Assembly (NCBI GenBank): GCA_010909165.1
Contig: VJWM01000172.1
Coordinates: forward strand, 124,001 to 188,000
Direction of reading: 5' to 3'
DNA: 64,000 bases
Origin: Anthoceros angustus
Taxonomy: Eukaryota; Plantae; Anthocerotophyta
The position numbers and the translations under genes were made by a program. Shown here in pieces: positions 4,546 through 58,069 of this stretch; the stretch's first letter is position 1, and each line of letters starts with the position of its first letter. The notes beneath the pieces are model-generated. The model was not told the DNA's origin. It saw only the letters and a list, made by a program, of their open reading frames with translations, and made no database searches.

Positions 4546-5415
4546 TCATGTCAATTCATCGTCAGCATCTTCCTGAGCCTTCAACTGGTTCTTTGCACGA
4601 AGCAACAAGGTGGTTTTCCACTGATCCAGCCTACTGATGCCATCAAACTCCCTGACCACGTCAGTGAACTTCTCCACGTCACCGTCATCAACTGCTGCAG
4701 CCAAATCCATGAGAAGCTTGCACTCCCTGGTGTTGGGAAACGTGGGATCAAAGTCTTGGTACTTGTCCAAGGCGTTGTGGATGGCCACCGCATCCTTACC
4801 GCACAGATGACACAGGCCAGCACTCAGTAGATAGTTTTTGACGCTGTACTTGAGCAGGTTGCTGTCCAAGGACTCCCTGGCCACGGCCTCAAAGATCTCG
4901 ATCGCTTTCGGGTACACCTCGAGCTGGGCTGCCATCTGAGCCACCTTCAACCTGCACTGCATACCTGTGCTGTTCACCTCCTCCCCTTGATACAAGTCTG
5001 CTGCCTTCTCATATGCCAACATGGCTCCCTCCATTTTCTCATCCTTCTCCAGGATCTCTCCCATGTCCTTGTAGTGCTTGGCAGCCATGGACAACCTTCC
5101 AATTTCCATGAAGATGTTGCAGGCTTTGTCAAGAAGAGCACAAGATTCTTTCAGGTTGGTTTTCTTGTAGCAGTTGGCTGCATCCACGTAGCATGAAGCT
5201 GCTTCATGCTTGCTCTCCATCTTGAACTGGCAATCAGCAAGCTTGATGTAGGCCCCTGCTGCCTTATCCCAGCATTTTCCCAGCTTGTAGGAGTTGGCCG
5301 CCTTCTCTAGCAGTTCAGCTGCCTCATCCCATTTGCTCCCAAACAATCCCCACCCTTTGGCCTTTTTCTCCGCCTTGGATTCATACTCATCACCTTTTGC
5401 CTCAAAGTCTCCCAT
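4546..5415 (-). CDS. ASNAP: alpha-soluble NSF attachment protein (alpha-SNAP), 289 aa, intronless
   Basis: Uninterrupted ORF MGDFEAKG...GWGLFGSKWDEAAELLEKAANSYKL...NLLKYSVK...DPTFPNTRECKLL...LDQWKTTLLLR...DDELT, colinear with plant alpha-SNAP. The ATG is at 5415; the track's 5418 start is a GTG. Confidence 0.96.
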   Translation of the reverse strand: MGDFEAKGDEYESKAEKKAKGWGLFGSKWDEAAELLEKAANSYKLGKCWDKAAGAYIKLADCQFKMESKHEAASCYVDAANCYKKTNLKESCALLDKACNIFMEIGRLSMAAKHYKDMGEILEKDEKMEGAMLAYEKAADLYQGEEVNSTGMQCRLKVAQMAAQLEVYPKAIEIFEAVARESLDSNLLKYSVKNYLLSAGLCHLCGKDAVAIHNALDKYQDFDPTFPNTRECKLLMDLAAAVDDGDVEKFTDVVREFDGISRLDQWKTTLLLRAKNQLKAQEDADDELT

Positions 5416-5483
5416 CACTTCTCACAATTGCCACTCATTTTCTTGCTGTTTGCCTTTGCCTCCTACACTCTGTTTTGTAAACC

Positions 5484-13234: not shown

Positions 13235-14522
13235 GGATGGTGTGCTCATCTGTTGTCGGAGAAGAACCTTGTGCTTTCATAACGGCAGATAAGGATAAGG
13301 TGGATGTCTGATTTGATAAGGGTCATGCTCGTTTTTTTTATCCTCTCCTTCTCTGAAGGTGTGTGTTCTGATGGGGGATTGGCTGTAACAGGTTGCTGCC
13401 TCGAACAGAGAGAGTCAGAGTGAAGTGGAAGGACACACAGTTCCTGGTGGTAGTGTGAGATGGCGTGCTAGAGGTAGAGGCAGAAGATGTTTGGTCCTTC
13501 ATATCTATTTCGACAACCATTTTCCTGGAGGGATGGTCCGTAAGGAAATAGATGTGATTGGTTGGGTCTTGCTCAACTAGCCAAGTTTGGCAAATCGTGG
13601 AGACTTATTGCTTGCTTATGAGACAAGCCTTCTTGTTGTCAGTGACTTGTTGTCCAGTTTGCTGAATATGATTAAGGAACAGACTTCGTTTCTCAAATGG
13701 TTCTATTTGGCAAATCAATTTGGGAGCTTTGATCTCGTCTTCAATTCTGTGTACATCCAAGGCACTTTGAGCTGGGCACTGGGATTTGGAATACCAGCAG
13801 GCGCCATCAATCTGGGAGGTCTGGGAGGTTTTGTGTCATGCTTAATTCTGGTGTACATCCTAGACGAGCTGGCTGGGTATTGGGATTCTAAATACCACAG
13901 CGGCCATGGGAATTGTACTGTCTGACGCCATACAGACACCAGAAGGGGGCAGCGCTTTGACCAGGATTGCCCAGGTCCTTGGTGTTGCGGGGAGAAAGTA
14001 GGAGGTGGCTTCTGCTAAACTTTTGGATCAGGTGTGAGAAGATGAGTCATAAAAGCACGAGCAGGCACGCAGAAAGCTTGAAACATACCCTACAGTTCAC
14101 GTAAGTCTGTCCTCCTTGTGCTCCGTGTTGTTGCTCGGTCGCTATTATGGTGATCAAGCAGTTTTAACGGAATCGGATGACGTTCGATCCATTTCAGATT
14201 CCTGGAGAAGCCCGCCATTGACATACATGGCAGCTCTTCACACACACTCGGGTGGAGGAGGTGAAGGTCAGACAGCACGCCGAGGTTTCGAAGGATATGC
14301 ATTGAGCTTGTGATGGGGACATTTGCCATGGTGGCAGGATAGAAGACAGCAGGCTCTTGTTTGAGTTATTCTTGCACCTCCGATCTCTTGGTTTCGCATC
14401 ACCATGTCAGGATCAGTACCAACATCAGTTGCAAAGACTGCATCGCTTTATGGGTTGGGTGAAAGTACTCGTCATAATGGCGTTCGACTAACCTCATGGC
14501 AGAACCTGCCTTGTGGGCTGTG
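13235..14522 (+). pseudogene. NPF (NRT1/PTR) transporter pseudogene, forward-orientation type
   Basis: Degenerate motifs KEQTSFLKWFYL, VYIQGTLSWALGFGIP, ALTRIAQVL, HFRFLEKPAI, TRVEEVK and IELVMGTFAMVAG, with many stops and frameshifts. Confidence 0.75.
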
Positions 14523-14871
14523 AAAGGGAGCTTTCTACACAACCTGCGCGTGGCCACCTCCAGCCTGGGTGAAAACTGGGAGGCCACCTCCAGCCTGGGT
14601 GAAAACTGGGAGGTCAGTGGAAGTATGCCATCCCATTTCCGTCTTCAAGATATGGACGGATGGCTTGCTACAGTTTCTACGACCCCATGCACTCAAAGTC
14701 CCTCGAAGTATTTGACTCAAAGTCTCTCGGCAGCGCATTCGCTCAACGTCCAAAAGCTGTTGAGAAGGCTTCCATGGTCAAAAGCAGCGTATGCACCGGC
14801 AAGATACAAAATTGCAAATAAATACAGCAGACATTTTCTTTGTCCATAGTTCACAGTTCATATCCTAATGG

Positions 14872-15263
14872 TCAAAAGGTTGAATCGAAATATATGAATT
14901 ATCCAAATTTATCACTAAATGATAGCCTAGAGAGTCAGCTATGCAAACTATTGCCGAACCTTGAGCAAATGTTAATGGAAACCTGGATATCTTCCATGCT
15001 CCATTCTGCCTTTCAAGTTGCGAAAGGCACGAAATTTATCGTCGTGAACATGGGCAGAAAGGATTTTGTACATATCTACGATGGCTCTAACTTGGTCATC
15101 AATGGATTGCCAACCTGCGGAGGTCTTGATACACTGAAACAACTTAGCATCTGCAGATAGAAAATATTGCCACCAACTAGCTCTGGTACTTCTATCCTTG
15201 GTGTCTCCATACTTCACCTTCAAGTGCTCTTCAAAAGGCTCGAAAACGCCTCTCATGTTGTTG
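14872..15263 (-). pseudogene. 3' part of the coiled-coil gene (C-terminal domain only), product of a 1.13-kb tandem duplication
   Basis: MRGVFEPFEE...YKILSAHVH; joined to NPF sequence through TGTTGTTG at 15256-15263. Confidence 0.85.
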
Positions 15264-15647
15264 CTCAGTCGCTATTATGGTGATCAAGTAGTTTTAACGG
15301 AATCGGATGACGTTCGTTCCATTTCAGATTCCTGGAGAAGCCCGCCATTGACATACATGGCAGCTCTTCACGCACACTCGGGTGGAGGAGGTGAAGGTCA
15401 GACAGCACGCCGAAGGATATGCATTGAGCTTGTGATGGGGACATTTGCCATGGCGGCAGGATAGAAGACAGCAGGCTCTTGTTTGAGTTATTCTTGCACC
15501 TCCGATCTCTTGGTTTCGCATCACCATGTCCAAGGATCAGTACCCAACATCAGTTGCAAAGACTGCATCGCTTTATGGGTTGGGTGAAAGTACTCGTCAT
15601 AATGGCGTTCGACTAACCTCATGGCAGAACCTGCCTTGTGGGCTGTG
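15256..15647 (+). pseudogene. Partial NPF pseudogene duplicate
   Basis: Copy of 14126-14522. Confidence 0.7.
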
Positions 15648-15993
15648 AAAGGGAGCTTTCTACACAACCTGCGTGGCCACCTCCAGCCTGGGTGGCTGGG
15701 AGGCCACCTCCAGCCTGGGTGAAAACTGGGAGGTCAGTGGAAGTATGCCATCCCATTTCCGTCTTCAAGATATGGACGGATGGCTTGCTACAGTTTCTAC
15801 GACCCCATGCACTCAAAGTCCCTCGAGAAAGTATTTGACTCAAAGTCTCTCGGCAGCGCATTCGCTCAACGTCCAAAAAGCTGTTGAGAAGGCTTCCATG
15901 GTCAAAACGCGTATGCACCGGCAAGATACAAAATTGCAAATAAATACAGCAGACATTTTCTTTGTCCATAGTTCACAGTTCATATCCTAATGG

Positions 15994-16785
15994 TCAAAAA
16001 GGTTGAATCGAAATATATGAATTATCCAAATTTATCACTAAATGATAGCCTAGAGAGTCAGCTATGCAAACTATTGCCGAACCTTGAGCAAATGTTAATG
16101 GAAACCTGGATATCTTCCATGCTCCATTCTGCCTTTCAAGTTGCGAAAGGGCACGAAATTTATCGTCGTGAACATGGGCAGAAAGGATTTTGTACATATC
16201 TACGATGGCTCTAACTTGGTCATCAATGGATTGCCAACCTGCGGAGGTCTTGATACACTGAAACAACTTAGCATCTGCAGATAGAAAATATTGCCACCAA
16301 CTAGCTCTGGTACTTCTATCCTTGGTGTCTCCATACTTCACCTTCAAGTGCTCTTCAAAAGGCTCGAAAACGCCTCTCATGTTGTTGACGCTTTTTGCCG
16401 CTAAGAGATCGAATTCGAGATCCCGAATTCTTCGTTTACAGAAAGAAATAGCCAGGTCCTTAGCCCTCGAAGCTTCAATGGCCTGCTCCTTAGCTTCAAT
16501 GGCCTGCTGCAAGGCTTGCTCCCTAGCCCTCGAGACATGCTCCCTAGCCCTCGAGACCTGGATGGTTTCTTCATGCAGCGTCTTGACTGAATCAATGAGC
16601 ATCTGTTGCCTCTCGGCGTCCTTCTCTGTTCTCAACAGGGTCAACAAAGGGTCCATATTGGAAGCTCTAACACTGAAAGCCTTGACATGCCTATCCCGAG
16701 CCCGAGCATAATCTCTTCTTGGCATACTCAAGCCCATGAGTGATTCAGAAGCAGAGCCGCTAATCGGCACCAGCAAAGCCGCCAT
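15994..16785 (-). CDS. Uncharacterised 263-aa protein: putative plastid transit peptide, heptad-repeat coiled coil, unknown C-terminal domain (only uninterrupted copy)
   Basis: Intronless ORF. The N-terminal 42 aa are Ser/Ala/Arg-rich and end in FSVRAS. Then REHVSRA/REQALQQAIEA/KEQAIEA heptads, then NMRGVFE...WWQYFL...YKILSAHVH...GYHL. The ORF is seen directly; expression is not shown. Confidence 0.7.
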   Translation of the reverse strand: MAALLVPISGSASESLMGLSMPRRDYARARDRHVKAFSVRASNMDPLLTLLRTEKDAERQQMLIDSVKTLHEETIQVSRAREHVSRAREQALQQAIEAKEQAIEASRAKDLAISFCKRRIRDLEFDLLAAKSVNNMRGVFEPFEEHLKVKYGDTKDRSTRASWWQYFLSADAKLFQCIKTSAGWQSIDDQVRAIVDMYKILSAHVHDDKFRALSQLERQNGAWKISRFPLTFAQGSAIVCIADSLGYHLVINLDNSYISIQPF

Positions 16786-16871
16786 AGCTAAAGACGCCCG
16801 CAATCCTCAACCAGCAAAGGCTTCCCGATTCTCCACTACCTCTCACCCCGCGAGCTGAAGAGCAAAGCCCT

Positions 16872-16983
16872 CCCTCCAATTCGTCTCTCAAACAGGGCGC
16901 AGCCAGGACAGCTCCTCCAATTCGTCTCTCAAACAGGGCGCAGCCAGGACAGCTCCTCCAATTCGTCTCTCAAAGGGCGCAGG
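16872..16983. repeat. ~42-bp VNTR, 3 units
   Basis: Unit cctccaattcgtctctcaaacagggcgcagcc(a)aggacagct. Confidence 0.9.
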
Positions 16984-17354
16984 CAAAGACAGGTAGCCCA
17001 GCCCAGCTCAGCGAAGCAGACAGCGGCTCCTTTCCTCAGCACAGCGGCAGACAGTGGGCAGAAGGAGGCGGCAAGCTCCCAAGATGCGAGAGCAGCACGG
17101 GGACTCAAATTCCCTTCCGCACCGAATTCAGCGGAGCTGTATAGAGCGGAAGACAGCGGCAGGAGGAACAGCGCCAGGGGCCAGGGCAGGGTCAGCAGGA
17201 GGCGTTGCTGCGTCTGCTGAGCAAGGAATCTGTTGAGGCCTTCTGCTGGCCCTGTCGCTATGTCTCAGGCTCCTCTGATGAGTGGCAACAGCTTGTGTTT
17301 TGCGTGCGCGTGGCAAGAAGTATCTCTCGGGGTGAAGACGTCCTCCGCCACGGA

Positions 17355-20100
17355 AAGCCCTGTACATGTGTATGCGAGAAGTCGTGAAGTGGAAGATGCA
17401 TGCCAGGTTTTCATTCTGTGAGATTCGGTAGTGATGGAGTAGTTAGTGGTAGGAGCTGCCTGGGTTCAATCCATCCTAGCCATTCTGTGAGTACTGCCAG
17501 TCGAGCATGACGCGCTTGTTGTGTATGAACAACTGGCTTGCCGGGGATGTGTTTGTCAGCAACTAGTTGGCTTGTGGACATACTGTACATGGAAAATGTG
17601 GGAGTTTGAAGGATGCCCGGTGAGTGTTAGCACAGCACGGCCACCTGCGCCATGCCATGGAATGCCCTGATATCTGTGTATGCGAAATGACGTGAACCTG
17701 AGGGCTTGAGGCAGGACCGGAAATGGGGTCGTGACGGCTGCAAATTGAGTAAGTTCACCTTTTGTAGCTGGCCTCTGAGTGCGTGCAGTTGCTGCGGATT
17801 TGTCAGGGTTGGGTTTTCTGGACAGCGTGGCCATGAAAGGATGAGTGGACATGGGCTGCCGTTCTTGGACAGGCTCTTTATTTGAAATGGTCTGATGTAC
17901 TGAAGGATGGTTTGCATTGAAGCTGATGGCATTCTGTTGCCGATCTGCTGATCCATTCGTGGTAGGCGGACGAGTTTGGGATGAGTGGATCTGGATAGCT
18001 GTGTGTGTGGGGGCTGTGTCTTGATGGTGGCTTGTGGGTATGCCAACCTCGTGTGTGCAGGATTGGGAATGGCCTCCGTGACTGCTGGAACTCTGTGAGC
18101 CTGTTATGTCAGGAGAGGAAGCCCTCTGTTACGTCCTTTTGGCTGACCCTGTTACTTTTGCTTAGATTGTATTGGGCGTCGTGATGGCTGGGATTGTAGA
18201 ATGTTATGTCGGCAGGGGATGCTTTCTGAGGCCGTTGGAGCTGCCCTGGATTCTATGGCGCAGATAGACCTTGCTGTTTCACAGCCTCTGGTTCATAATG
18301 CGCACGAAAGTGTCCGTCTGTAAGAAGGATTCATTTGTGGAGCGACGAGTACATTGATCTCAGTGTCCATTTGGGGTGCAGTGGAATATTCCATCTGGAA
18401 TGCTATGAGAGCTGGGTATGCCGAGCACGGGCTTGCTCGAATATGAAGCGCCAGTTGTGTGTGGACGACTGGAGCCGGAGGGCCTCATTTTCGCTGACCA
18501 TGTTACTTTGCTGTGCTTGAAAAGGCTGGTGCACAGCACTGGTGCCTTCAGAAGAGCATGGAGGTGCACACGCTGATTGCCCAAACACTGACTGCAGGGT
18601 ATCAAGGTGGGCAGCTGCCTGCAGATATGTGTGCCCAAGCAAAATGTTGCAAACTGAAGGATGCATGCCAGTTTTTCACATCATGGCCACAATGATGTGG
18701 TGACATGGAATGTCGTGATAGCAGGTTATGCAAAATGTGATGAACTGAGAGAGGCACGCCAGGTGTTTGACAGCATGAACTCGAAGAATGAGGTGACATG
18801 GAATGCCTGATAGCTGGGTACGCTGGGTACGCTGGACAAGGGCTCGGACATGAGTACCTTGTTCTGGAGGGAGGGCTGATCCTAGATGCTCATGCCTTTT
18901 CACTTGCCTCCTGAAGGCTAGTGCAAGTACTGGGGCCTTAAAGAAGGATGGGCAGCTGCACTCACTGGTTGACGAAAGAGGACTGCTGGGTAACGTGGTG
19001 TTGGGCAGATGGACGAAGAATTTCAATTTGCCGTACCAACCTGCGGCAGAGGATGCTTTCTGAGGCCGTTGGAGCTGCCCTGGATTCTATGGCGCAGATA
19101 GACCTTGCTGTTTCACAGCCTCTGGTTCATAATGCGCACGAAAGTGTCCGTCTGTAAGAAGGATTCATTTGTGGAGCGACGAGTACATTGATCTCAGTGT
19201 CCATTTGGGGTGCAGTGGAATATTCCATCTGGAATGCTATGAGAGCTGGGTATGCCGAGCACGGGCTTGCTCGAACATGAAGCGCTAGTTGTGTGGACGA
19301 CTGGAGCCGGAGGGCCTCATTTTCGCTGACCATGTTACTTTGCTGTGCTTGAAAAGGCTGGTGCACAGCACTGGTGCCTTTTCAGAAGAGCATGGAGGTG
19401 CACACGCTGATTGCCCAAACACTGACTGCAGGGTATCAAAGGTGGGCAGCTGCCTGCGGATATGTGTGCCCCCAAAAATGTTGCAAACTGAAGGATGCAT
19501 GCCAGTTTTTCACATCATGGCCACAAATGATGTGGTGACATGGAATGTCGTGATAGCAGGTTATGCAAAATGTGATGAACTGAGAGAGGCACGCCAGGTG
19601 TTTGACAGCATGAACTCGAAGAATGAGGTGACATGGAATGCCTGATAGCTGGGTACGCTGGGTACGCTGGACAAGGGCTCGGACATGAGTACCTTGTTCT
19701 GGAGGAGGGCTGATCCTAGATGCTCATGCCTTTTCACTTGCCTCCTGAAGGCTAGTGCAAGTACTGGGGCCTTAAAGAAGGATAGGCAGCTGCACTCACT
19801 GGTTGACGAAAGAGGACTGCTGGGTAACGTGGTGTTGGGCAGATGGACGAAGAATTTCAATTTGCCGTACCAACCTGCGGCAGAGGTAACAACCCATCCG
19901 CCCCTGCGACAGCATGACTCAGCACATCAGCAGAGCGAGGCTCCTCGTCAGCGGGACTTTTGGGAGGTCTGGCTCCAGTGCCATACAACCGGAAATTCCA
20001 ACAGAGAAATCCCGGAAATTTCCCCACACAAACCCAACCTGACAATGCTGTCAGCAGCTAGGTGCAAGCACACCATGATCTCACCTTGAAGCCCCAGGCT
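17355..20100 (+). pseudogene. PLS-class PPR pseudogene with an 834-bp internal tandem duplication
   Basis: VHVYARSREVEDACQVF, WNALISVYAK, NDVVTWNVVIAGYAKCDELREARQVFDSMNSKNEVTWNA; stops and frameshifts are shared between copies. Confidence 0.85.
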
Positions 20101-22264: not shown

Positions 22265-22330
22265 TTGTGCACATTGTTTGTCCATAGGACAAAGTTCACA
22301 TCCTAATAGTCAAAAAGGTTGCATCGAAAT

Positions 22331-23193
22331 CTATGATTTATCCAAATCTATCAGTAAGTGATAGCCTAGAGAGTCAGCTATGCAAACTATTGCCGAACCT
22401 TGAGCAAATGTTAATGGAAACCTGGATATCTTCCATGCTCCATTCTGCCTTTCAAATTGCGAAAGGGCACCATTTTGCCTTTGATGTTGCGAAAGGGCAC
22501 GAAATTTATCGTCGTGAACATGGGCAGAAAGGATTTTGTACATATCTACGATGGCTCTAACTTGGTCATCAATGGATTGCCAACCTGCGGAGGTCTTGAT
22601 ACACTGAAACAACTTAGCATCTGCAGATAGAAAATATTGCCACCAACTAGCTCTGGTACTTCTATCCTTGGTGTCTCCATACTTCACCTTCAAGTGCTCT
22701 TCAAAGAGCTCAAAACGCCTCTCATGTTGTTGACGCTTTTTGCCGCTAAGAGATCGAATTCGAGATCCCGAATTCTTCGTTTACAGAAAGAAATAGCCAG
22801 GTCCTTAGCCCTCGAAGCTTCTATGGCCTGCTCCTTAGCTTCTATGGCCTGCTCCTTAGCTTCAATGGCCTGCTGCAAGGCTTGCTCCCTAGCCCTCGAG
22901 ACTTGCTCCCTAGCCATCGAGGCTTGCTCCCTAGCCCTCGAGACCTCCTCCCTAGCCCTCGAGACCTGGATGGTTTCCTCATGCAGCGTCTTGACTGAAT
23001 CAATGAGCATCTGTTGCCTCTCGGCGTCCTTCTCTGTCCTCAACAGGGTCAACAAAGGGTCCATATTGGAGCTCTAACACTGAAAGCCTTGACATGCCTA
23101 TCCCGAGGCCCAGGCATAAGGTCTTCTTGGCATACTCAAGCCCATGAGTGATCCAGAAGCAGAGCCGCTAATCAGCACCAGCAATGCCGCCAT
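22331..23193 (-). pseudogene. Coiled-coil gene copy, full length with 1-bp indels
   Basis: All three parts present; extra heptads; short duplication FRALSQHQRQNGALSQFERQNG. The indels may be sequencing errors. Confidence 0.7.
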
Positions 23194-23277
23194 AGATAAA
23201 AGACGCCCGCAATCCTCAACAGCAAAGGCTTCCCGATTCTCCACTACCTCTCACCCCGCGAGCTGAAGAGCAAAGCC

Positions 23278-28680: not shown

Positions 28681-29549
28681 CAATAGTGGACGAACCTGCT
28701 TCCCCATCTCCAAGGCTGGGCGACCCAGCAAGCGATCAAGTGGCACACAAATATCTGATTCATCATCAGAGAAGTCCATGTCACCACATGTTGTCGAGGA
28801 AGCCTGCCACGGCAATCACGCTTTGAGCGTTCTTCCTTCTTTCAGGCTGTCACACTTTGCATACATGTCTTGCAGACCACTAGTAGCCACTACCGTTTAC
28901 CATGTACAGAAAGCGAGACGAGGAAAGGAGGAAGAAGAGTCCGTTACATATTTGGTGGGTGTCGCATTAATGTTTTCTAAAATGGTATGCTGTGCGTGAG
29001 GATAAATAGGAAGTCTGGGATTCCAAAGCAAAGGGAATCCAGGCTGAATCTCTTATTCAGCGTCACGCGCTTTCCACAGCGGGAAAAGACCTACTTCCAT
29101 CCTCGCTGTTTCAATCCAGAGGGCAAGGAAGAAAGCAGAGTACCTGTGCCAGTCAGGGTTCCTGGCCCTCTTCACCTGCGATTGGATTGAGAATCGAAGG
29201 GTGCTGATCCCTCGAGCCGTGCTAGCGACAGTCTGCTTGGAATTGATGTACATGGAATGGATCTGAATTGGTGGGGATCTGGAGTTGGTGGGTTCCGGAG
29301 TTGGTGTGTAGAATCGGTCTCCATTCGTGGGATTCTGCGGTTGGTGTGTAAAATCTGTCTGAATTCGTAGGATTCCGATGTGGGTGTGAATTGGTGGGTT
29401 GGTGTTGAATTGTTGGGTTGTTGAATTGGCCTCAATTCGTAGGATTCCGAAGTTGCGCTGAACTTGTGATGGAATGGGGAACGGGTCTTCCTGCATGCAA
29501 GACTGCCCACAACAGAATGGATTGGGGAGAAGGTGGTAGGACATGCAGC

Positions 29550-30617
29550 ATGAAGGAGCAACACAGCAAAATGGGCAGACAGGAAGGTGGGCTCCCACAA
29601 CACAAGGGTTCCAAGCCCAAGAGCCAGGGGAGGCAGCAGAGGGAGGTGCTGGTGGTGGGGAATTACTGCCATGACGTGATCCAGCTCCCGCGGGGTGTGG
29701 AAGCGGAGGTCCTGGGGGGGTCGGTGTCCTACATCGGGAACGTGCTGGACGCGGTTGGAGTGGACGCCTTGGTGGTGGCCAAGGTCGGTCCGGACTTCGC
29801 CTACGCGGAGAGTTCTGCGCCCAAGGCGCACCCGCCTCGGGTGGTGCCAGGCCGCCGCACAACCCAGTTCTTCGCAGACCTGAGCAAGAAAGGAGAAGAG
29901 CGCGTCCTTCGAGCCGGCAATCTGTGCGAGCCCATCTTCCCGTGGGACATCCCGGGGGACTGCCAATTCCGGACTGGCCTAGCGGTGGGCGTGGCGGGCG
30001 AGATCCGGGCGGACACCCTGGAGCGCATGGCGGCTGCCTCGGATTGTTTGGTGGTGGATGTGCAGGCTTTGATCCGTACAATCGAGCCCGGAAGCGGGGT
30101 GGTGGGGCTGTGCCCGCTCCGGGACACGGCCTTCTACCCGCTTTTGCACAATGTGGCATACCTTAAGGCATCCAGCTCCGAGGCCGCCTTCATCGATTTG
30201 GAGGAGGTTAGGCAGCGCACCTGCGTGATCGTGACGCAGGGGCGGGACGGGAGCCGGGTGTATGGAGATGGGTTCGAGTTCCTTGTGCCGCCCTTCGCTG
30301 CGGAGGAGGTGGATCCGACCGGGGCCGGGGATTCCTTCCTGGCGGGATTCTGCACCGGGTTGCATCACGGGCTGGAGGTGGGGAAGGCTGTGTTGATGGG
30401 GAACTACTTCGGGGCTCTGGCCGTGGGGCAGGTCGGGGTGCCCACCTTCTCGACGCTGCAGCTGCAGATGCAGCTTCAGGCAAGTTGGACTATGGCTTTC
30501 TTCTGGCCGCTGGGTTTGCGTTGGGTGGAGGTTGATTGGTTGGAGGATTTTTGTGTTGTTGCTCAGATGCTGGATGTGTGCTTGATGATGTGCAGGGGTG
30601 GGGTTGCAACGGTCTGA
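29550..30617 (+). CDS. MIK: myo-inositol kinase (inositol 3-kinase, PfkB family), the only intact copy; exon 1 29550-30479, probable GC-AG intron 30480-30566, last exon 30567-30617
   Basis: VLVVGNYCHDV, LGGSVSYI, GLAVGVAGEI, VVDVQALIR, LKASSSEA and PfkB signature EVDPTGAGDSFLAG, colinear with plant MIK/maize LPA3. Start codon (29469/29517/29550/29571) and last exon are uncertain. Confidence 0.9.
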   Translation: MKEQHSKMGRQEGGLPQHKGSKPKSQGRQQREVLVVGNYCHDVIQLPRGVEAEVLGGSVSYIGNVLDAVGVDALVVAKVGPDFAYAESSAPKAHPPRVVPGRRTTQFFADLSKKGEERVLRAGNLCEPIFPWDIPGDCQFRTGLAVGVAGEIRADTLERMAAASDCLVVDVQALIRTIEPGSGVVGLCPLRDTAFYPLLHNVAYLKASSSEAAFIDLEEVRQRTCVIVTQGRDGSRVYGDGFEFLVPPFAAEEVDPTGAGDSFLAGFCTGLHHGLEVGKAVLMGNYFGALAVGQVGVPTFSTLQLQMQLQASWTMAFFWPLGLRWVEVDWLEDFCVVAQMLDVCLMMCRGGVATV

Positions 30618-34430: not shown

Positions 34431-34744
34431 GGGCAGAAAGGAGCTTTCTACACAACTGCGTGGCCATCTCCGGCTGGATGGCGGGAGGTCGGTGGGAGTA
34501 TGCCATCCCATTTCCGTCTTCAAGATATGGACGGGGATGGCTTGCTACGGTTTCTACGACCCCATGCACTCAAAGTCCCTCGAGAAAGTATTCGCTCAAC
34601 GTCGAGAAAGCTGTTGAGAAGGCTTCCATGGCCAAAATGCGTATGCACCGGCAAGATATGAAGTTGCAAACAAATACAGCAGACATTCTCTTTGTCCATA
34701 GGTCAAAGTTCACATCCAAATAGTCAAAAAGCTTGCATCGAAAT

Positions 34745-35515
34745 CTATGAATTATCCAAATCTATCACTAAGTGATAGCCTAGAGAGTCAGCTATGCAAA
34801 CTATTGCCGAACCTTGAGCAAATGTTAATGGAAACCTGGATATCTTCCATGCTCCATTCGCCTTTCAAGTTGCGAAGGGCACGAAATTTATATCGTCGTG
34901 AACATGGGCAGAAAGAATTTTGTACATATCCACGATGGCTTTAACTTGGTCATCAATGGATTGCCAACCTGCGGAGGTCTTGATACACTGAAACAACTTA
35001 GCATCTGCGGATAGAAAATATCGCCACCAATTAGCTCTAGTACCTCTATCCTTGATGTCTCCATACTTCACCTTCAAGTGCTCTTCAAAGAGCTCGAAAA
35101 CGCCTCTCATGTTGTTGACGCTTTTTGCCGCTAAGAGATCGAATTCGAGATCCCGAATCCTTCGTTCACAGAGAGAAATAGCCAGCTCCTTAGCCCTCGA
35201 AGCTTCAATGGCCTGCTGCAAGGCTTGCTCCCTAGCCATCGAGGCTTGCTCCCTAGCCCTCGAGACCTCCTCCCTAGCCCTCGAGACCTGGATGGTTTCT
35301 TCATGCAGCGTCTTGACTGAATCAATGAGCATCTGTTGCCTCTCGGCGTCCTTCTCTGTCCTCAACAGGGTCAACAAAGGGTCCATATTGGAAGCTCTAA
35401 CACTGAAAGCCTTGACATGCCTATCCTGAGCCCGAGCATAAGGTCTTCTTGGCATACTCAAGCCCATGAGTGATCCAGAAGCAGAGCCGCTAATCGGCAC
35501 CAGCAATGCCGCCAT
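34745..35515 (-). pseudogene. Coiled-coil gene copy, open for most of its length, frameshift near the 3' end
   Basis: ORF 34865-35566 covers transit peptide, coil and most of the domain; the frame breaks after VHDD. Possible sequencing error. Confidence 0.7.
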
Positions 35516-35599
35516 AGATAAAAGACGCCCGCAATCCTCAACCAGCAAGGCTTCCTGATTCTCCACTACCTCTCACCCGCGAGCTGAAGAGCAAAGCCC

Positions 35600-39298: not shown

Positions 39299-40264
39299 GC
39301 AAGTTGGACTATGGCTTTCTTCTTTTCTTGCTGCTGGGTGTGCGTTGGGTGGAGGTTGATTGGTTGGAGGGTTTGTGTGTTGTTGCTCAGATGCTGGATG
39401 TGTGCTTGATGATGTGCAGGGGTGGGGTTGCAACGGTCTGAGGCAGGGGATGTGCATGATCCTTGAGTCCAATGCTGTGTTGGGTATTAACGATGGCTGC
39501 ACTCGTGGGCTGGGAGCAGGGAGTGTGTGCTCGCCGTAGCCCTCCTCGGCAGGAGAATGGCTGCCGAGAGCATGCTGGTGCAGCAGGGAAGGTGATGAAG
39601 ATGGAGGAGCAGGTGCTGGGGTTAGGGCAACGGACGGACGTCCATGGTTGCACTGAATGAATGTGGCAATGCTGCAGTATGTGTGCTCGGGCTTGAGACC
39701 TGAGAGAGAGCTGCTGGGGCCCTGTGATGAGATGGGCTCGAGGATGGTGTGCTCATCTGTTGTCGGAGAAGAACCTTGTGCTTTCATAACAGCAGATAAG
39801 GATAAGGTGCCTGTCTGATTTGATAAGGGTCATGCTCGTGTTTTCGATCCTCTCCTTCTCTGAAGGTGTGTGTTCTGATGGGGATTGGCTGTAACAGGTT
39901 GCCGCCTCGAACAGAGAGTCAGAGTGAAGTGGAAGGACACAGTTCCTGGTGGTAGTGTGAGATGGCGTGCTAGAGGTAGAGGCAGAAGATGTTTGGTCCT
40001 TCATATCTATTTCGACAACCATTTTCCTGGAGGATGGTCCGTAAGGAAATAGATGTGATTGGTTGGGTCTTGCTCAACTAGCCATGTTTGGCAAATCGTG
40101 GAGACTTATTGCTTGCTTATGAGACAAGCCTCTTGTTGTCAGTGACTGTCATCCGGTTGGATGAATAGACTTCGTTCTCAATTGGTTTTATTTGGCAAAT
40201 TTGTGCACATTGTTTGTCCATAGGTCAAAGTTCACATCAAATAGTCAAAAGCTTGCATCGAAAT

Positions 40265-41111
40265 CTATGAATTATCCAAATCTATCACTAAGTGATAGCC
40301 TAGAGAGTCAGCTATGCAAACTATTGCCGAACCTTGAGCAAATGTTAATGGAAACCTGGATATCTTCCATGCTCCATTCTGCCTTTGATGTTGCGAAAGG
40401 GCACGAAATTTATCGTCGTGAACATGGGCAGAAAGGATTTTGTACATATCTACGATGGCTCTAACTTGGTCATCAATGGATTGCCAACCTGCGGAGGTCT
40501 TGATACACTGAAACAACTTAGCATCTGCAGATAGAAAATATTGCCACCAACTAGCTCTGGTACTTCTATCCTTGGTGTCTCCATACTTCACCTTCAAGTG
40601 CTCTTCAAAGGCTCGAAAACGCCTCTCATGTTGTTGACGCTTTTTGCCGCTAAGAGATCGAATTCGAGATCCCGAATTCTTCGTTCACAGAGAAATAGCC
40701 AGCTCCTTAGCCCTCAAGCTTCAATGGCCTGCTCCTTAGCTTCAATGGCCTGCTCCTTAGCTTCAATGGCCTGCTCCTTAGCTTCAATGGCCTGCTGCAA
40801 GGCTTGCTCCCTAGCCATCGAGGCTTGCTCCCTAGCCTTGAGACCTCCTCCTAGCCCTCGAGACCTCCTCCTAGCCCTCGAGACCTGGATGGTTTCTTCA
40901 TGCAGCGTCTTGACTGAATCAATGAGCATCTGTTGCCTCTCGGCGTCCTTCTCTGTCCTCAACAGGGTCAACAAAGGGTCCATATTGGAGCTCTAACACT
41001 GAAAGCCTTGACATGCCTATCCCGAGCCCGAGCATAAGGTCTTCTTGGCATACTCAAGCCCATGAGTGATCCAGAAGCAGAGCCGCTAATCGGCACCAGC
41101 AATGCCGCCAT
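40265..41111 (-). pseudogene. Coiled-coil gene copy with 1-bp indels
   Basis: Full length; three KEQAIEA units. Confidence 0.7.
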
Positions 41112-41196
41112 AGATAAAAGACGCCCGCAATCCTCAACCAGCAAAGGCTTCCCGATTCTCCACTACCTCTCACCCCGCAGGCTGAAGAGCAAAGCC

Positions 41197-41311
41197 CTCC
41201 TCAATTCGTCTCTCAAACAGGGCGCAGCCAGGACAGCTCCCTCAATTCGTCTCTCAAACAGGGCGCAGCCAAGGACAGCTCCCTCCAATTCGTCTCTCAA
41301 ATGGGGCGCAG
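41197..41311. repeat. 42-bp VNTR, 3 units
   Basis: Same unit. Confidence 0.88.
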
Positions 41312-45192: not shown

Positions 45193-46158
45193 GCAAGTTG
45201 GACTATGGCTTTCTTCTTTCTTGCTGCTGGGTGTGCGTTGGGTGGAGGTTGATTGGTTGGAGGGTTTGTGTGTTGTTGCTCAGATGCTGGATGTGTGCTT
45301 GATGATGTGCAGGGGTGGGGTTGCAACGGTCTGAGGCAGGGGATGTACATGATCCTTGAGTCCAATGCTGTGTTGGGTATTAACGATGGCTGCACTCGTG
45401 GGCTGGGAGCAGGGGTGTGCTCGCCGTAGCCCTCCTCGGCAGGAGAATGGCTGCCGAGAGCATGCTGGTGCAGCAGGAAGGTGATGAAGATGGAGGAGCA
45501 GGTGCTGGGGTTAGGCAACGGACGGACGTCCATGGTTGCACTGAATGAATGTGGCAATGCTGCAGTATGTGTGCTCGGGCTTGAGACCTGAGAGAGAGCT
45601 GCTGGGGCCCTGTGATGAGATGGGCTCGAGGATGGTGTGCTCATCTGTTGTCGGAGAAGAACCTTGTGCTTTCATAACAGCAGATAAGGATAAGGTGCCT
45701 GTCTGATTTGATAAGGGTCATGCTCGTGTTTTCGATCCTCTCCTTCTCTGAAGGTGTGTGTTCTGATGGGGATTGGCTGTAACAGGTTGCCGCCTCGAAC
45801 AGAGAGAGTCAGAGTGAAGTGGAAGGACACAGTTCCTGGTGGTAGTGTGAGATGGCGTGCTAGAGGTAGAGGCAGAAGATGTTTGGTCCTTCATATCTAT
45901 TTCGACAACCATTTTCCTGGAGGGATGGTCCGTAAGGAAATAGATGTGATTGGTTGGGTCTTGCTCAACTAGCCATGTTTGGCAAATCGTGGAGACTTAT
46001 TGCTTGCTTATGAGACAAGCCTCTTGTTGTCAGTGACTGTCATCCGGTTGGATGAATAGACTTCGTTTCTCAATTGGTTTTATTTGGCAAATTTGTGCAC
46101 ATTGTTTGTCCATAGGTCAAAGTTCACATCCAAATAGTCAAAAAGCTTGCATCGAAAT

Positions 46159-47009
46159 CTATGAATTATCCAAATCTATCACTAAGTGATAGCCTAGAGA
46201 GTCAGCTATGCAAACTATTGCCGAACCTTGAGCAAATGTTAATGGAAACCTGGATATCTTCCATGCTCCATTCTGCCTTTGATGTTGCGAAAGGGCACGA
46301 AATTTATCGTCGTGAACATGGGCAGAAAGGATTTTGTACATATCTACGATGGCTCTAACTTGGTCATCAATGGATTGCCAACCTGCGGAGGTCTTGATAC
46401 ACTGAAACAACTTAGCATCTGCAGATAGAAAATATTGCCACCAACTAGCTCTGGTACTTCTATCCTTGGTGTCTCCATACTTCACCTTCAAGTGCTCTTC
46501 AAAGAGCTCGAAAACGCCTCTCATGTTGTTGACGCTTTTTGCCGCTAAGAGATCGAATTCGAGATCCGAATTCTTCGTTCACAGAGAGAAATAGCCAGCT
46601 CCTTAGCCTCGAAGCTTCAATGGCCTGCTCCTTAGCTTCAATGGCCTGCTCCTTAGCTTCAATGGCCTGCTCCTTAGCTTCAATGGCCTGCTGCAAGGCT
46701 TGCTCCTAGCCATCGAGGCTTGCTCCCTAGCCCTTGAGACCTCCTCCTAGCCCTCGAGACCTCCTCCCTAGCCCTCGAGACCTGGATGGTTTCTTCATGC
46801 AGCGTCTTGACTGAATCAATGAGCATCTGTTGCCTCTCGGCGTCCTTCTCTGTCCTCAACAGGGTCAACAAAGGGTCCATATTGGAAGCTCTAACACTGA
46901 AAGCCTTGACATGCCTATCCTGAGCCCGAGCATAAGGTCTTCTTGGCATACTCAAGCCCATGAGTGATCCAGAAGCAGAGCCGCTAATCGGCACCAGCAA
47001 TGCCGCCAT
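46159..47009 (-). pseudogene. Coiled-coil gene copy with 1-bp indels
   Basis: Full length; three KEQAIEA units. Confidence 0.7.
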
Positions 47010-47094
47010 AGATAAAAGACGCCCGCAATCCTCAACCAGCAAAGGCTTCCGATTCTCCACTACCTCTCACCCCGCGAGCTGAAGAGCAAAGCCC

Positions 47095-49590: not shown

Positions 49591-50694
49591 ATCTGTGCAT
49601 GAAGCTGGGCGACCCAGCATGCGAATACGCAAGTGGCACACAAATATCTGATTCATCATCAGAGAAAGTCCATGTCACCACATGTTGTCGAGGAAGCCTG
49701 CCACGGCAATCACGCTTTGAGCGTTCTTCCTTCTTTCAGGCTGTCACACTTTGCATATACTAGTTGCTGCTGGGTGTGCGTTGGGTGGAGGTTGATTGGT
49801 TGGAGGTTTGTGTGTTGTTGCTCAGATGCTGGATGTGTGCTTGATGATGTGCAGGGGTGGGGTTGCAACGGTCTGAGGCAGGGGATGTGCATGATCCTTG
49901 AGTCCAATGCTGTGTTGGGTATTAACGATGGCTGCACTCGTGGGCTGGGAGCAGGGGTGTGTGCTCGTAGCCCTCCTCGGCAGGAGAATGGCTGCCGAGA
50001 GCATGCTGGTGCAGCAGGGAAGGTGATGAAGATGGAGGAGCAGGTGCTGGGGTTAGGGCAACGGACGGACGTCCATGGTTGCACTGAATGAATGTGGCAA
50101 TGCTGCAGTATGTGTGCTCGGGCTTGAGACCTGAGAGAGCTGCTGGGGCCCTGTGATGAGATGGGCTCGAGGATGGTGTGCTCATCTGTTGTCGGAGAAG
50201 AACCTTGTGCTTTCATAACAGCAGATAAGGATAAGGTGCCTGTCTGATTTGATAAGGGTCATGCTCGTTTTTCGATCCTCTCCTTCTCTGAAGGTGTGTG
50301 TTCTGATGGGGGATTGGCTGTAACAGGTTGCCGCCTCGAACAGAGAGTCAGAGTGAAGTGGAAGGACACACAGTTCCTGGTGGTAGTGTGAGATGGCGTG
50401 CTAGAGGTAGAGGCAGAAGATGTTTGGTCCTTCATATCTATTTCGACAACCATTTTCCTGGAGGATGGTCCGTAAGGAAATAGATGCGATTGGGTCTTGC
50501 TCAACTAGCCATGTTTGGCAAATCGTGGAGACTTATTGCTTGCTTATGAGACAAGCCTCTTGTTGTCAGTGACTGTTGTCCAGTTGGATGAATAGACTTC
50601 GTTTCTCAATTGGTTTTATTTGGCAAATTTGTGCACATTGTTTGTCCATAGGTCAAAGTTCACATCCAAATAGTCAAAAAGCTTGCATCGAAAT

Positions 50695-51479
50695 CTATGA
50701 ATTATCCAAATCTATCACTAAGTGATAGCCTAGAGAGTCAGCTATGCAAACTATTGCCGAACCTTGAGCAAATGTTAATGGAAACCTGGATATCTTCCAT
50801 GCTCCATTCTGCCTTTCAAGTTGCGAAAGGGCACGAAATTTATCGTCGTGAACATGGGCAGAAAGGATTTTGTACATATCACGATGGCTCTAACTTGGTC
50901 ATCAATGGATTGCCAACCTGCGGAGGTCTTGATACACTGAAACAACTTAGGATCTGCGGATAGAAAATATCGCCACCAACTGGCTCTGGTACCTCTATCC
51001 TTGGTGTCTCCATACTTCACCTTCAGTGCTCTTCAAAGAGCTCGAAAACGCCTCTCATGTTGTTGACGCTTTTTGCCGCTAAGAGATCGAATTCGAGATC
51101 CCGAATCCTTCGTTCACAGAGAAATAGCCAGCTCCTTAGCCCTCGAAGCTTCAATGGCCTGCTGCAAGGCTTGCTCCCTAGCCATCGAGGCTTGCTCCTA
51201 GCCCTCGAGACCTCCTCCTAGCCCTCGAGACCTCCTCCCTAGCCCTCGAGACCTGGATGGTTTCTTCATGCAGCGTCTTGACTGAATCAATGAGCATCTG
51301 TTGCCTCTCGGCGTCCTTCTCTGTCCTCAGCAGGGTCAACAAAGGGTCCATATTGGAAGCTCTAACACTGAAAGCCTTGACATGCCTATCCAGGCCCGAG
51401 CATAAGGTCTTCTTGGCATACTCAAGCCCATGAGTGATCCAGAAGCAGAGCTGCTGATCGGCACCAGCAATGCCGCCAT
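50695..51479 (-). pseudogene. Coiled-coil gene copy with 1-bp indels
   Basis: Full length; no KEQAIEA expansion. Confidence 0.7.
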
Positions 51480-51562
51480 AGATAAAAGACGCCCGCAATC
51501 CTCAACCAGCAAAGGCTTCCCGATTCTCCACTACCTCTCACCCGCGAGCTGAAGAGCAAGCC

Positions 51563-54020: not shown

Positions 54021-55121
54021 TGTGCATGAAGCTGGGCGACCCAGCATGCGAATACGCAAGTGGCACACAAATATCTGATTCATCATCAGAGAAAGTCCAT
54101 GTCACCACATGTTGTCGAGGAAGCCTGCCACGGCAATCACGCTTTGAGCGTTCTTCCTTCTTTCAGGCTGTCACACTTTGCATATACTAGTTGCTGCTGG
54201 GTGTGCGTTGGGTGGAGGTTGATTGGTTGGAGGTTTGTGTGTTGTTGCTCAGATGCTGGATGTGTGTGATGATGTGCAGGGGTGGGGTTGCAACGGTCTG
54301 AGGCAGGGGATGTGCATGATCCTTGAGTCAATGCTGTGTTGGGTATTAACGATGGCTGCACTCGTGGGCTGGGAGCAGGGAGTGTGTGCTCGTTGTAGCC
54401 CTCCTCGGCAGGAGAATGGCTGCCGAGAGCATGCTGTGCAGCAGGGAAGGTGATGAAGATGGAGGAGCAGGTGCTGGGGTTAGGGCAACGGACGGACGTC
54501 CATGGTTGCACTGAATGAATGTGGCAATGCTGCAGTATGTGTGCTCAGGCTTGAGACCTGAGAGAGAGCTGCTGGGGCCCTGTGATGAGATGGGCTCGAG
54601 GATGGTGTGCTCATCTGTTGTCGGAGAAGAACCTTGTGCTTTCATAACAGCAGATAAGGATAAGGTGCCTGTCTGATTTGATAAGGGTCATGCTCATATC
54701 GATCTCTCCTTCTCTGAAGGTGTGTGTTCTGATGGGGATTGGCTGTAACAGGTTGCCGCCTCGAACAGAGAGAGTCAGAGTGAAGTGGAAGGACACAGTT
54801 CCTGGTGGTAGTGTGAGATGGCGTGCTAGAGGTAGAGGCAGAAGATGTTTGGTCCTTCATATCTATTTCGACAACCATTTTCCTGGAGGGATGGTCCGTA
54901 AGGAAATAGATGTGATTGGTTGGGTCTTGCTCAACTAGCCATGTTTGGCAAATCGTGGAGACTTATTGCTTGCTTATGAGACAAGCCTCTTGTTGTCAGT
55001 GACTGTCATCGGTTGGATGAATAGACTTCGTTCTCAATTGGTTTTATTTGGCAAATTTGTGCACATTGTTTGTCCATAGGTCAAAGTTCACATCCAAATA
55101 GTCAAAAGCTTGCATCGAAAT

Positions 55122-55699
55122 CTATGAATTATCCAAATCTATCACTAAGTGATAGCCTAGAGAGTCAACTATGCAAACTATTGCCGAACCTTGAGCAAAT
55201 GTTAATGGAAACCTGGATATCTTCCATGCTCCATTCTGCCTTTGATGTTGCGAAAGGGCACGAAATTTATCGTCGTGAACATGGGCAGAAAGGATTTTGT
55301 ACATATCTACGATGGCTCTAACTTGGTCATCAATGGATTGCCAACCTGCGGAGGTCTTGATACACTGAAACAACTTAGCATCTGCGGAGAAAATATTGCC
55401 ACCAACTAGCTCTGGTACTTCTATCCTTGGTGTCTCCATACTTCACCTTCAAGTGCTCTTCAAAGAGCTCGAAAACGCCTCTCATGTTGTTGACGCTTTT
55501 TGCCGCTAAGAGATCGAATTCGAGATCCCGAATTCTTCGTTCACAGAGAGAAATAGCCAGCTCCCAGCCCTCCTTCAATGGCTGCTCCTTAGCTTCAATG
55601 GCCTGCTCCTTAGCTTCAATGGCCTGCTCCTTAGCTTCAATGGCCTGCTGCAAGGCTTGCTCCTAGCCATCGAGGCTTGCTCCCTAGCCCTTGCCTCCT
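55122..55699 (-). pseudogene. Coiled-coil gene 3' part, truncated by a 2.04-kb duplication junction
   Basis: Joins the PPR 3' region through CTTGCCTCCT at 55690-55699. Confidence 0.8.
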
Positions 55700-56060: not shown

Positions 56061-57143
56061 GTGCATGAAGCTGGGCGACCCAGCATGCGAATACGCAAGT
56101 GGCACAAATATCTGATTCATCATCAGAAAGTCCATGTCACCACATGTTGTCGAGGAAGCCTGCCACGGCAATCACGCTTTGAGCGTTCTTCCTTCTTTCA
56201 GGCTGTCACACTTTGCATATACTAGTTGCTGGGTGTGCGTTGGGTGGAGGTTGATTGGTTGGAGGTTTGTGTGTTGTTGCTCAGATGCTGGATGTGTGCT
56301 TGATGATGTGCAGGGTTGCAACGGTCTGAGGCAGGGGATGTGCATGATCCTTGAGTCAATGCTGTGTTGGGTATTAACGATGGCTGCACTCGTGGGCTGG
56401 GAGCAGGGAGTGTGTGCTTGTGTAGCCCTCGGCAGGAGAATGGCTGCCGAGAGCATGCTGGTGCAGCAGGAAGGTGATGAAGATGGAGGAGCAGGTGCTG
56501 GGGTTAGGGCAACGGACGGACGTCCATGGTTGCACTGAATGAATGTGGCAATGCTGCAGTATGTGTGCTCAGGCTTGAGACCTGAGAGAGAGCTGCTGGG
56601 GCCCTGTGATGAGATGGGCTCGAGGATGGTGTGCTCATCTGTTGTCGGAGAAGAACCTTGTGCTTTCATAACAGCAGATAAGGATAAGGTGCCTGTCTGA
56701 TTTGATAAGGTCATGCTCGTTTTCGATCCTCTCCTTCTCTGAAGGTGTGTGTTCTGATGGGGATTGGCTGTAACAGGTTGCCTCGAACAGAGAGAGTCAG
56801 AGTGAAGTGGAAGGACACAGTTCCTGGTGGTAGTGTGAGATGGCGTGCTAGAGGTAGAGGCAGAAGATGTTTGGTCCTTCATATCTATTTCGACAACCAT
56901 TTTCCTGGAGGATGGTCCGTAAGGAAATAGATGTGATTGGTTGGTCTTGCTCAACTAGCCATGTTTGGCAAATCGTGGAGACTTATTGCTTGCTTATGAG
57001 ACAAGCCTCTTGTTGTCAGTGACTGTCATCCGGTTGGATGAATAGACTTCGTTTCTCAATTGGTTTTATTTGGCAAATTTGTGCACATTGTTTGTCCATA
57101 GGTCAAAGTTCACATCCAAATAGTCAAAAGCTTGCATCGAAAT

Positions 57144-57974
57144 CTATGAATTATCCAAATCTATCACTAAGTGATAGCCTAGAGTCAGCTATGCAAACTA
57201 TTGCCGAACCTTGAGCAAATGTTAATGGAAACCTGGATATCTTCCATGCTCCATTCTGCCTTTGATGTTGCGAAAGGGCACGAAATTTATCGTGAACATG
57301 GGCAGAAAGGATTTTGTACATATCCACGATGGCTCTAACTTGGTCATCAATGGATTGCCAACCTGCGGAGGTCTTGATACACTGAAACAACTTAGCATCT
57401 GCAGATAGAAAATTGCCACCAACTAGCTCTGGTACTTCTATCCTTGGTGTCTCCATACTTCACCTTCAAGTGCTCTTCAAAGAGCTCGAAAACGCCTCTC
57501 ATGTTGTTGACGCTTTTTGCCGCTAAGAGATCGAATTCGAGATCCCGAATTCTTCGTTCACAGAGAGAAATAGCCAGCTCCCAGCCCTCCTTCAATGGCT
57601 GCTCCTTAGCTTCAATGGCCTGCTCCTTAGCTTCAATGGCCTGCTCCTTAGCTTCAATGGCCTGCTGCAAGGCTTGCTCCTAGCCATCGAGGCTTGCTCC
57701 CTAGCCCTTGCCTCCTAGCCCTCGAGACCTCCTCCCTAGCCCTCGAGACCTGGATGGTTTCTTCATGCAGCGTCTTGACTGAATCAATGAGCATCTGTTG
57801 CCTCTCGGCGTCCTTCTCTGTCCTCAACAGGGTCAACAAAGGTCCATATTGGAAGCTCTAACACTGAAAGCCTTGACATGCCTATCCAGCCCGAGCATAA
57901 GGTCTTCTTGGCATACTCAAGCCCATGAGTGATCCAGAAGCAGAGCCGCTAATCGGCACCAGCAATGCCGCCAT
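57144..57974 (-). pseudogene. Coiled-coil gene copy with small indels
   Basis: Full length; shares the KEQPLKEGWELA variant with the 55122 copy. Confidence 0.7.
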
Positions 57975-58069
57975 AGATAAAAGACGCCCGCAATCCTCAA
58001 CCAGCAAAGGCTTCCTGATTCTCCACTACCTCTCACCCGCGAGCTGAAGAGCAAAGCCCTCCCTCCAAT

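Follow-up and report, generated by a model that had tools for sequence, protein, structure and literature searches.

A tandemly repeated intronless gene of Anthoceros angustus as a candidate member of a small, undescribed land-plant family

INTRODUCTION

HEPN ribonucleases act as dimers, and HEPN domains are frequent toxin domains. To our knowledge, no HEPN domain has been described that is fused to a long N-terminal coiled coil or that is limited to a few plant lineages. The HEPN fold is a helical bundle of two alpha-hairpins of about 100 to 120 amino acids, and its hallmark is an Rx4-6H motif whose catalytic arginine and histidine lie at the last core helix, with an acidic residue upstream that typically stands in an E-x3-[KR] context (PMC3710099). 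Some HEPN families have lost the arginine or the histidine of this motif and appear to use another conserved histidine, so that a re-wired HEPN-type site has precedent (PMC3710099).

The locus described here lies in a 64,000-nucleotide stretch of DNA from the hornwort Anthoceros angustus (the window), in which an initial annotation had singled out an amplified, apparently plastid-targeted coiled-coil gene and proposed it as a candidate driver of the array that carries it. Set beside lineage-restricted ("orphan") plant genes in tandem arrays, this gene is alike in being intronless and short, in belonging to no Pfam family, in its patchy taxonomic spread, and in having apparently expanded by unequal crossing-over along with neighboring gene fragments. 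It differs from such genes in not being a de novo ORF; distant homologs, a confident predicted fold, and invariant polar residues set it apart, and for these reasons its C-terminal domain can be regarded as old and constrained. The explanation that we favor, and consider probable as a whole, is that this is a real gene of an undescribed family, that it is a passenger of a segmental repeat, that the breaks seen in its copies are mostly errors, and that a HEPN-like mechanism may tentatively be attached to it.

RESULTS AND DISCUSSION

Gene structure and protein layout

If read from a TTG start, the minus-strand ORF spans 15994-16803(-) and encodes 269 amino acids; read from the ATG at 16785, the gene and its protein are laid out as follows.

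15994..16785, minus strand: open gene copy of 263 amino acids plus stop, ATG at 16785, intronless; the sole open frame in the assembly
16660..16785, minus strand: N-terminal 42 residues, presequence-like, with an MA start, Ser/Ala/Arg-rich composition, and a VRAS end; homologs show no conservation here
16381..16653, minus strand: heptad coiled coil, approximately residues 45-135, made in part of 21-bp repeats, with in-frame differences in repeat number among copies
16030..16380, minus strand: conserved C-terminal domain, approximately residues 136-252 (~120-125 amino acids), delimited by the homolog alignment and the AlphaFold model
16159..16194, minus strand: family signature Y-x2-L-[SF]-x-H-x-H-x2-K (YKILSAHVHDDK), which contains the Y-x2-L-S-x2-V-H noted earlier

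AlphaFold, run on the single sequence, models the coil as one long helix (residues 57-151; pLDDT 83-89 at residues 50-110), and the length variants found among the copies come in units of 21 or 42 bp, which are in frame and correspond to 7 or 14 amino acids, that is, one or two heptads. The ORF protein has the long unbroken helix and the heptad periodicity of a coiled coil, and the heptad coil that had been noted from the letters alone is borne out both by the AlphaFold helix and by these whole-heptad steps in length.

The C-terminal part of the protein starts with NMRGVFE. The DNA of this domain has a GC content of 40.8% and a GC3 of 38%, versus 51% and 57% for the 5′ half, so the more AT-rich 3′ part reported in the initial annotation is a real feature of the gene. 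The motif Y-x2-L-S-x2-V-H, which had been picked out at 16168-16194, is equally real and is the best-conserved motif across the family described below.

Relatives of the protein

The last 139 residues served as the phmmer query in an exhaustive search of 1.84 billion representative proteins. Two of the five matches were repeat-protein noise, and the other three were true relatives: P0001 (197 amino acids; E = 3.5e-11), P0004 (236 amino acids), and P0005 (239 amino acids). Each of these consists of an N-terminal coiled coil followed by the same C-terminal domain. Identity to these distant homologs is 23-34%, and about 19-20 columns are invariant in the four-sequence domain alignment, among them G138, F140, E141, W164, C177, Y198, H204, H206, K209, P229, Q234, and C240; written as consensus elements, the family reads G-x-F-E, W, C, Y-x2-L-x2-H-x-H-x2-K, P-x4-Q, and C.

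P0004 derives from run SRR8185329, a transcriptome of the fern Cyclosorus parasiticus (PMC6913697), and lies on a 922-nt contig that holds a complete ORF with both UTRs. P0001 derives from run SRR4210093, on a transcript contig without an ATG upstream of the coil; by accession this run adjoins a Ceratopteris RNA-seq series (PMC10893450), and P0001 may be of fern origin. The 5′ end of its contig (Logan contig SRR4210093_86954, positions 1-165) contains, as judged by eye, a direct duplication of ~90-95 nt, and the contig may be 5′-rearranged or partial. The 17-kb metagenome contig that carries P0005 as an intronless ORF has a neighboring gene whose match to Pfam Tub is weak and whose sequence we interpret as that of a plant tubby-like F-box gene.

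Scans of all four members against Pfam, NCBIfam, and PADLOC returned no consistent family, PDB sequence and profile searches returned only noise, and ESM Atlas feature searches gave no match. A word-indexed search of 5.8 billion protein clusters yielded no match for the single protein and, with two alignments, only the known members; the exact protein is absent from a collection of 15 billion proteins. No relatives were found among viral contigs, in two metagenome scans, or by tblastn against phages. The C-terminal domain had been called unrecognized, and it is indeed absent from Pfam, NCBIfam, and PADLOC; it is also conserved in three distant homologs and has a confident predicted fold.

Judged by these searches, the family would extend over the hornwort lineage and one fern or more, and no member is detectable in seed plants. 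Its patchy distribution could reflect transfer between those two lineages, of the kind reportedly proposed for neochrome. On the sequence evidence, the ORF can be taken as a functional intronless nuclear gene belonging to a small, undescribed land-plant family.

Predicted fold and comparison with HEPN domains

Given an alignment of the four sequences only, AlphaFold modeled the last 152 residues with a mean pLDDT of 82.6 and a pTM of 0.79; in the single-sequence model, the C-terminal domain was poor. In this alpha/beta model, the end of the coil is followed by four to five helices, then by a beta-hairpin, one more helix, and a last strand. A Foldseek search of the domain model against the PDB returned nothing usable (all E > 0.4), and an ESM Atlas structure search with the same model gave TM values of at most 0.37. 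We take at least 20 of the 50 weak structural matches listed to be members of the HEPN superfamily in the sense of Anantharaman et al. (PMC3710099). These presumably comprise HI0074 (1jog), both GlnE helical domains (3k7d and 1v4a), and the HEPN proteins 1wwp, 2hsb, and 1ylm, and, on the same assumption, the HEPN toxins 8xdj, 5yep, and 7ae2, several Cas13 HEPN lobes, Csm6, AbiA, and HepS. What we take to be MtlR/YggD and the C-terminal domains of aminoglycoside nucleotidyltransferases are also among the weak matches.

The resemblance is closest to the HEPN-T/HI0074-type, nucleotidyltransferase-associated domains (1jog, 1wwp, 2hsb, and GlnE 3k7d). Like these, the domain measures ~110-125 amino acids and has a core predicted to be mostly helical, and its best matches, though weak, are overwhelmingly of HEPN type. 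An acidic residue in the first domain helix is followed by a conserved histidine and lysine; this residue, E141, does not vary among the members and sits in G-[VL]-F-E where that helix starts, and the residue at +4 is not consistently basic. The oligomeric context may be alike as well, the family having a coiled coil and HEPN ribonucleases being dimeric.

Unlike HEPN domains, the family carries [SF]-x-H-x-H-x2-K where a long helix ends and, later, [RK]-x6-Q, and a terminal strand and a beta-hairpin are part of its model. It lacks the Rx4-6H motif: in all four members, no arginine stands 4-6 residues before either invariant histidine of YKILSAHVHDDK, and the [RK]-x6-Q element (residues 227-234, ending in the invariant glutamine), which precedes the last helix, is a degenerate match in spacing only. 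None of the HEPN family models in Pfam, PADLOC, NCBIfam, or a PDB profile search matched. An hhalign comparison of the family with the C-terminal helical domain of Escherichia coli GlnE gave a probability of 0.3%; it paired YKILSAHVH with the GlnE segment YTTLRDELH, which is suggestive, not significant.

The likeness to HEPN that the initial annotation had tentatively raised has weak structural backing: the weak structural matches are mostly of HEPN type, but the Rx4-6H motif is missing and there is no similarity in sequence or profile. We would call the predicted domain HEPN-like in shape and, because sequence-level support is absent, do not file it as a HEPN member.

A possible mechanism, held at low confidence, would have the coil form a dimer or higher oligomer that joins the C-terminal domains, each with a HEPN-like helical core that has lost the canonical arginine. 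The conserved histidines, lysine, and glutamate might then make up a non-canonical site that binds RNA or nucleotides and perhaps acts as an RNase, and the protein may go to an organelle in this lineage. Taken to its full extent, this would be an unrecognized branch of HEPN-like nucleases or RNA binders in eukaryotes, in which His-x-His, Lys, and Glu replace Rx4-6H in a re-wired site. The protein would be oligomerized by its length-variable coil, sent to an organelle in this lineage, and maintained in tandem arrays of variable copy number in two related species, where it would serve in conflict or immunity or else in RNA processing within the organelle. We regard that full proposal as speculative and decidedly unlikely.

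Copies in the window and the origin of their frame breaks

BLASTN of the ORF against the window reproduced the earlier count of nine copies of this intronless minus-strand ORF, seven of them full length. All nine have one orientation, with starts at 14874, 15994, 22310, 34724, 40247, 46138, 50674, 55104, and 57126; the two partial ones, at 14874 and 55104, span just the 3′ 391 nt and the 3′ 555 nt of the ORF, respectively. The copies other than the open one are listed here.

14874..15263, minus strand: partial copy, C-terminal domain only, which arose by a local 1.13-kb tandem duplication (14126-15263 / 15256-16387)
22310..23212, minus strand: full-length copy, frame broken by 1-bp indels, with added in-frame insertions of 42, 21, and 30 bp
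34724..35534, minus strand: full-length copy of type B (nearest to the version in a related species), frame broken by small indels
40247..41130, minus strand: full-length copy of the main type, its frame disrupted by deletions of 1-2 bp that lie in homopolymers or short repeats
46138..47028, minus strand: full-length copy of the main type, second only to the 16-kb copy in having few breaks
50674..51498, minus strand: full-length copy of type B, frame broken by small deletions
55104..55691, minus strand: partial copy, the 3′ 555 nt of the ORF
57126..57993, minus strand: full-length copy of the main type, with several 1-3-bp deletions

Short-read contigs from the same species have a depth of ~80-87 over the ORF, versus ~10-13 for neighboring low-copy pieces; the sequencing runs retrieved, all at contig level, look like DNA. 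This depth supports a real copy number of ~7-8, and the array is therefore not an assembly artifact. Codon 257 is changed from TAT to TAG in all copies but the 15-kb and 16-kb ones, which ends the protein 7 codons earlier, past the conserved domain. The family-invariant residues are intact in every copy in the window, save for codons hit by indels and for L216H in the main type. Upstream of the open copy lies a short repeat.

16873..16982, no strand assigned: 41-42-bp tandem repeat ~90 bp upstream of the ATG, found with TRF

The same repeat (consensus starting CTCCCTCCAATTCGTCTCTCAAACAGGG; 2.7-6 units) stands upstream of the five copies for which TRF lists it (16873-16982, 41199-41320, 47094-47259, 51563-51731, and 58059-58310), and it may be a variable promoter or 5′-UTR element.

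No disabling lesion is common to all copies. The small indels are copy-specific, save for a T deletion (1 bp) that the 22-kb copy has in common with the 40-kb copy and a TC deletion (2 bp) that the 40-kb copy has in common with the 51-kb copy; with these two pairwise-shared deletions excepted, the initial observation of no all-copy stop and of chiefly copy-specific 1-bp indels is confirmed. Almost all of the small indels are 1-2-bp deletions, located in homopolymers (G in GGG, T in TTTT, and C in CCC) or in di- and trinucleotide runs such as TCTC, ATAT, and ACGACG. In the array as a whole, gap openings are at least as frequent as mismatches, with 8-18 gap openings per kb in the flanking blocks at 0.3-1% mismatch; such a ratio of gaps to substitutions is not evolutionary and therefore points to assembly errors. 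Over 15961-16487, short-read contigs from the same species show the main and commonest type of copy, with 0 gaps and 17 substitutions, and over 16492-16899 they contain a single gap plus a clean in-frame insertion of 42 bp; this gap would correspond to a 1-bp difference 7 nt upstream of the ATG. Because the deletions fall in homopolymers and short repeats and the short-read contigs carry no frame-breaking gap over the parts that they cover, most of the breaks are probably long-read homopolymer errors and most of the copies are probably intact.

Over the whole array (9251-64000), the assembly seems to hold uncorrected long-read indel errors, and the reading frames in it are for that reason untrustworthy.

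Taken at face value, the same breaks would mean that the indels are real, that all copies but one are pseudogenes, and that the gene is a decaying passenger of a neutral segmental tandem duplication, the open copy being either the sole functional gene or a matter of luck. Such decay would account for the fact that eight of the nine copies are interrupted or partial in the assembly, that dN/dS among the copies is 0.4-1 (from very few changes, and indistinguishable from neutral), that the PPR, MIK, and NPF pieces of the same units are mostly fragments, and that the ORF segment is no better conserved than its flanks. It does not sit well with indels that occur almost only in homopolymers and short repeats and whose density equals or exceeds that of substitutions, a pattern typical of errors, nor with short-read contigs of multi-copy depth that show the main type without frame breaks over the covered parts, nor with substitutions that spare the family-invariant residues, L216H excepted. 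We consider it unlikely that the copies are decaying in this way and prefer to see them as largely intact genes whose frames are broken by sequencing error.

Amplification and divergence of the array

The pieces of PPR, MIK (pfkB), and NPF (PTR2) genes that had been reported in the repeat unit are present. The array looks like an ordinary segmental tandem duplication, in which the gene would be one passenger of a ~6-kb repeat that also carries these pieces and that unequal crossing-over may have brought to about 7-9 copies. One MIK copy looks full length, an uninterrupted 399-amino-acid ORF of the pfkB family (myo-inositol-kinase-like) at 29418-30617 (+); the other array units have only C-terminal MIK fragments, for example at 39019-39441. 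An irregular stretch between array units contains a 24-bp tandem repeat (also scored as 47 bp) at 33208-33342, with 5.8 units and 86% match. Just outside the array, the Pfam SNAP model is matched over its full length (E = 2.9e-107) by an uninterrupted 290-amino-acid ORF at 4546-5418 (-), apparently an alpha-SNAP gene without introns and perhaps a retrogene.

The ORF and the 0.7 kb upstream of it are the most diverged part of the repeat unit, at ~2.3% versus 0.3-1% elsewhere. This uneven divergence points to a mosaic history or to partial homogenization by gene conversion. A single unit illustrates the pattern, with ~2.3% between units for 40247-41746 and 0.3-1% for the PPR and MIK blocks at 41747-46137, and other units behave likewise. 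Indel density in the ORF is about half that of the flanks; should the indels be errors, sequence composition alone may account for this difference.

The proposal that this gene is the driver or retained cargo of the amplicon finds no support in these figures: the ORF segment is the most diverged one, its dN/dS lies in the range given above, and the only favorable point is the halved indel density.

In a related species, the ORF and 0.7 kb downstream (15304-16911) are found at 90-95% identity and a contig depth of ~300-400, versus ~7-13 for low-copy sequence, which corresponds to roughly 30-50 ORF copies; the upstream flank (17046-17581) has no depth there. Of the 12 ORF differences listed between the two species, 4 are synonymous and the other 8 are not. 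Amplification of the gene seems to have gone further in that species, and in a different context. Because the related species holds an amplified ORF with a different upstream flank, amplification must be old or recurrent, and for this reason we keep a mobile or selfish reading, at a low probability. Under that reading the ORF would belong to an unclassified self-amplifying element, transposable or satellite-like, and would owe to it a high copy number in two species. The ~30-50 copies in the related species and the absence there of the window's upstream flank could be explained in this way, as could the intronless structure and the separate divergence history of the ORF segment within the unit. 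Against it, there is no match to any Pfam family, those of transposable elements included, and no viral relative; the copies in the window occur only within one head-to-tail array with fixed neighbors; the fern homolog is a short stand-alone mRNA-like contig; and P0005 is a single ORF beside what reads as an ordinary plant gene. A transposable-element protein was likewise sought by sequence in Pfam and the PDB, with no match, and the window copies are confined to the head-to-tail array. An identity as a LINE ORF1-like or gag-like protein was considered and rejected, since there is no similarity to such proteins and the homologs stand alone. On balance, we think a mobile element very unlikely and retain passage within an ordinary segmental duplication as the preferred account.

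The N terminus and the question of a chimera

The Ser/Ala/Arg-rich N terminus of 42 residues ending in VRAS, described in the initial annotation, is present in the translated ORF. In the 16-kb copy, these residues include 7 serines, 7 alanines, 7 arginines plus lysines, and 3 acidic residues; E14G and D25P in the majority of copies leave 1 acidic residue in 42. Chloroplast transit peptides are N-terminal extensions with many hydroxylated and basic residues, few acidic ones, and a V-x-A|A-like cleavage site, and the composition found here fits that description. The MA start, the Ser/Ala/Arg-rich and acid-poor composition, and the V-R-A|S end are shared with nuclear-encoded organelle proteins that have cleavable transit peptides, a likeness limited by the fact that composition alone fits a plastid presequence, a mitochondrial presequence, or none equally well. 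Among the relatives, P0004 starts with a basic, acid-poor stretch, P0005 has no N-terminal extension, and neither P0001 nor P0005 conserves the N-terminal region.

From these features the initial annotation had inferred a chimera in which a host targeting peptide is joined to a domain of foreign or orphan origin, possibly a toxin, with dosage or selfish behavior as the possible cause of the amplification. The presequence-like N terminus ending in VRAS, the AT-richer C-terminal domain, the enrichment of HEPN domains among the weak fold matches, and the lack of a lesion common to all copies are each compatible with such a gene. The homologs tell against it: the coil-plus-domain layout occurs in all three of them, at least one of which is from a fern, and the comparison indicates that this architecture is ancestral to the family and not a recent fusion. 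A foreign origin finds no backing in homology, as no bacterial, viral, phage, or plasmid relative was found in the collections searched, the C-terminal domain having a non-plant relative in none of them. The toxin idea is likewise unsupported. The ORF is also not preferentially conserved within the array. We judge this chimera and driver model extremely unlikely and retain the reading of a gene that belongs to an undescribed plant family.

AT-richness as a sign of foreign origin was rejected, since the same GC3 gradient is seen in all homologs (a 5′-to-3′ drop from 0.64-0.68 to 0.50-0.54 in each of the three). The sole plasmid match, a set of 66 Ralstonia megaplasmid hits from tblastn against plasmids (E = 0.03), was rejected as chance; most invariant residues are missing, stops lie nearby, and the site is intergenic, between an alcohol dehydrogenase gene and a LysR gene.

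Significance

A practical lesson of this locus is that the apparent pseudogenization of the tandem copies is largely a pattern of assembly error. Annotation of the array will under-call intact genes, and the same probably applies to other repeats in this assembly. For the family, the analysis defines a conserved and confidently folding domain that no family library or structure database recognizes, with detected relatives only in a fern and in unplaced plant sequences. If the weak HEPN-like signal holds, a nuclease superfamily known mainly from microbial defense and toxin systems would have in this family an unusual offshoot specific to plants, with a non-canonical active site and perhaps an organellar address.
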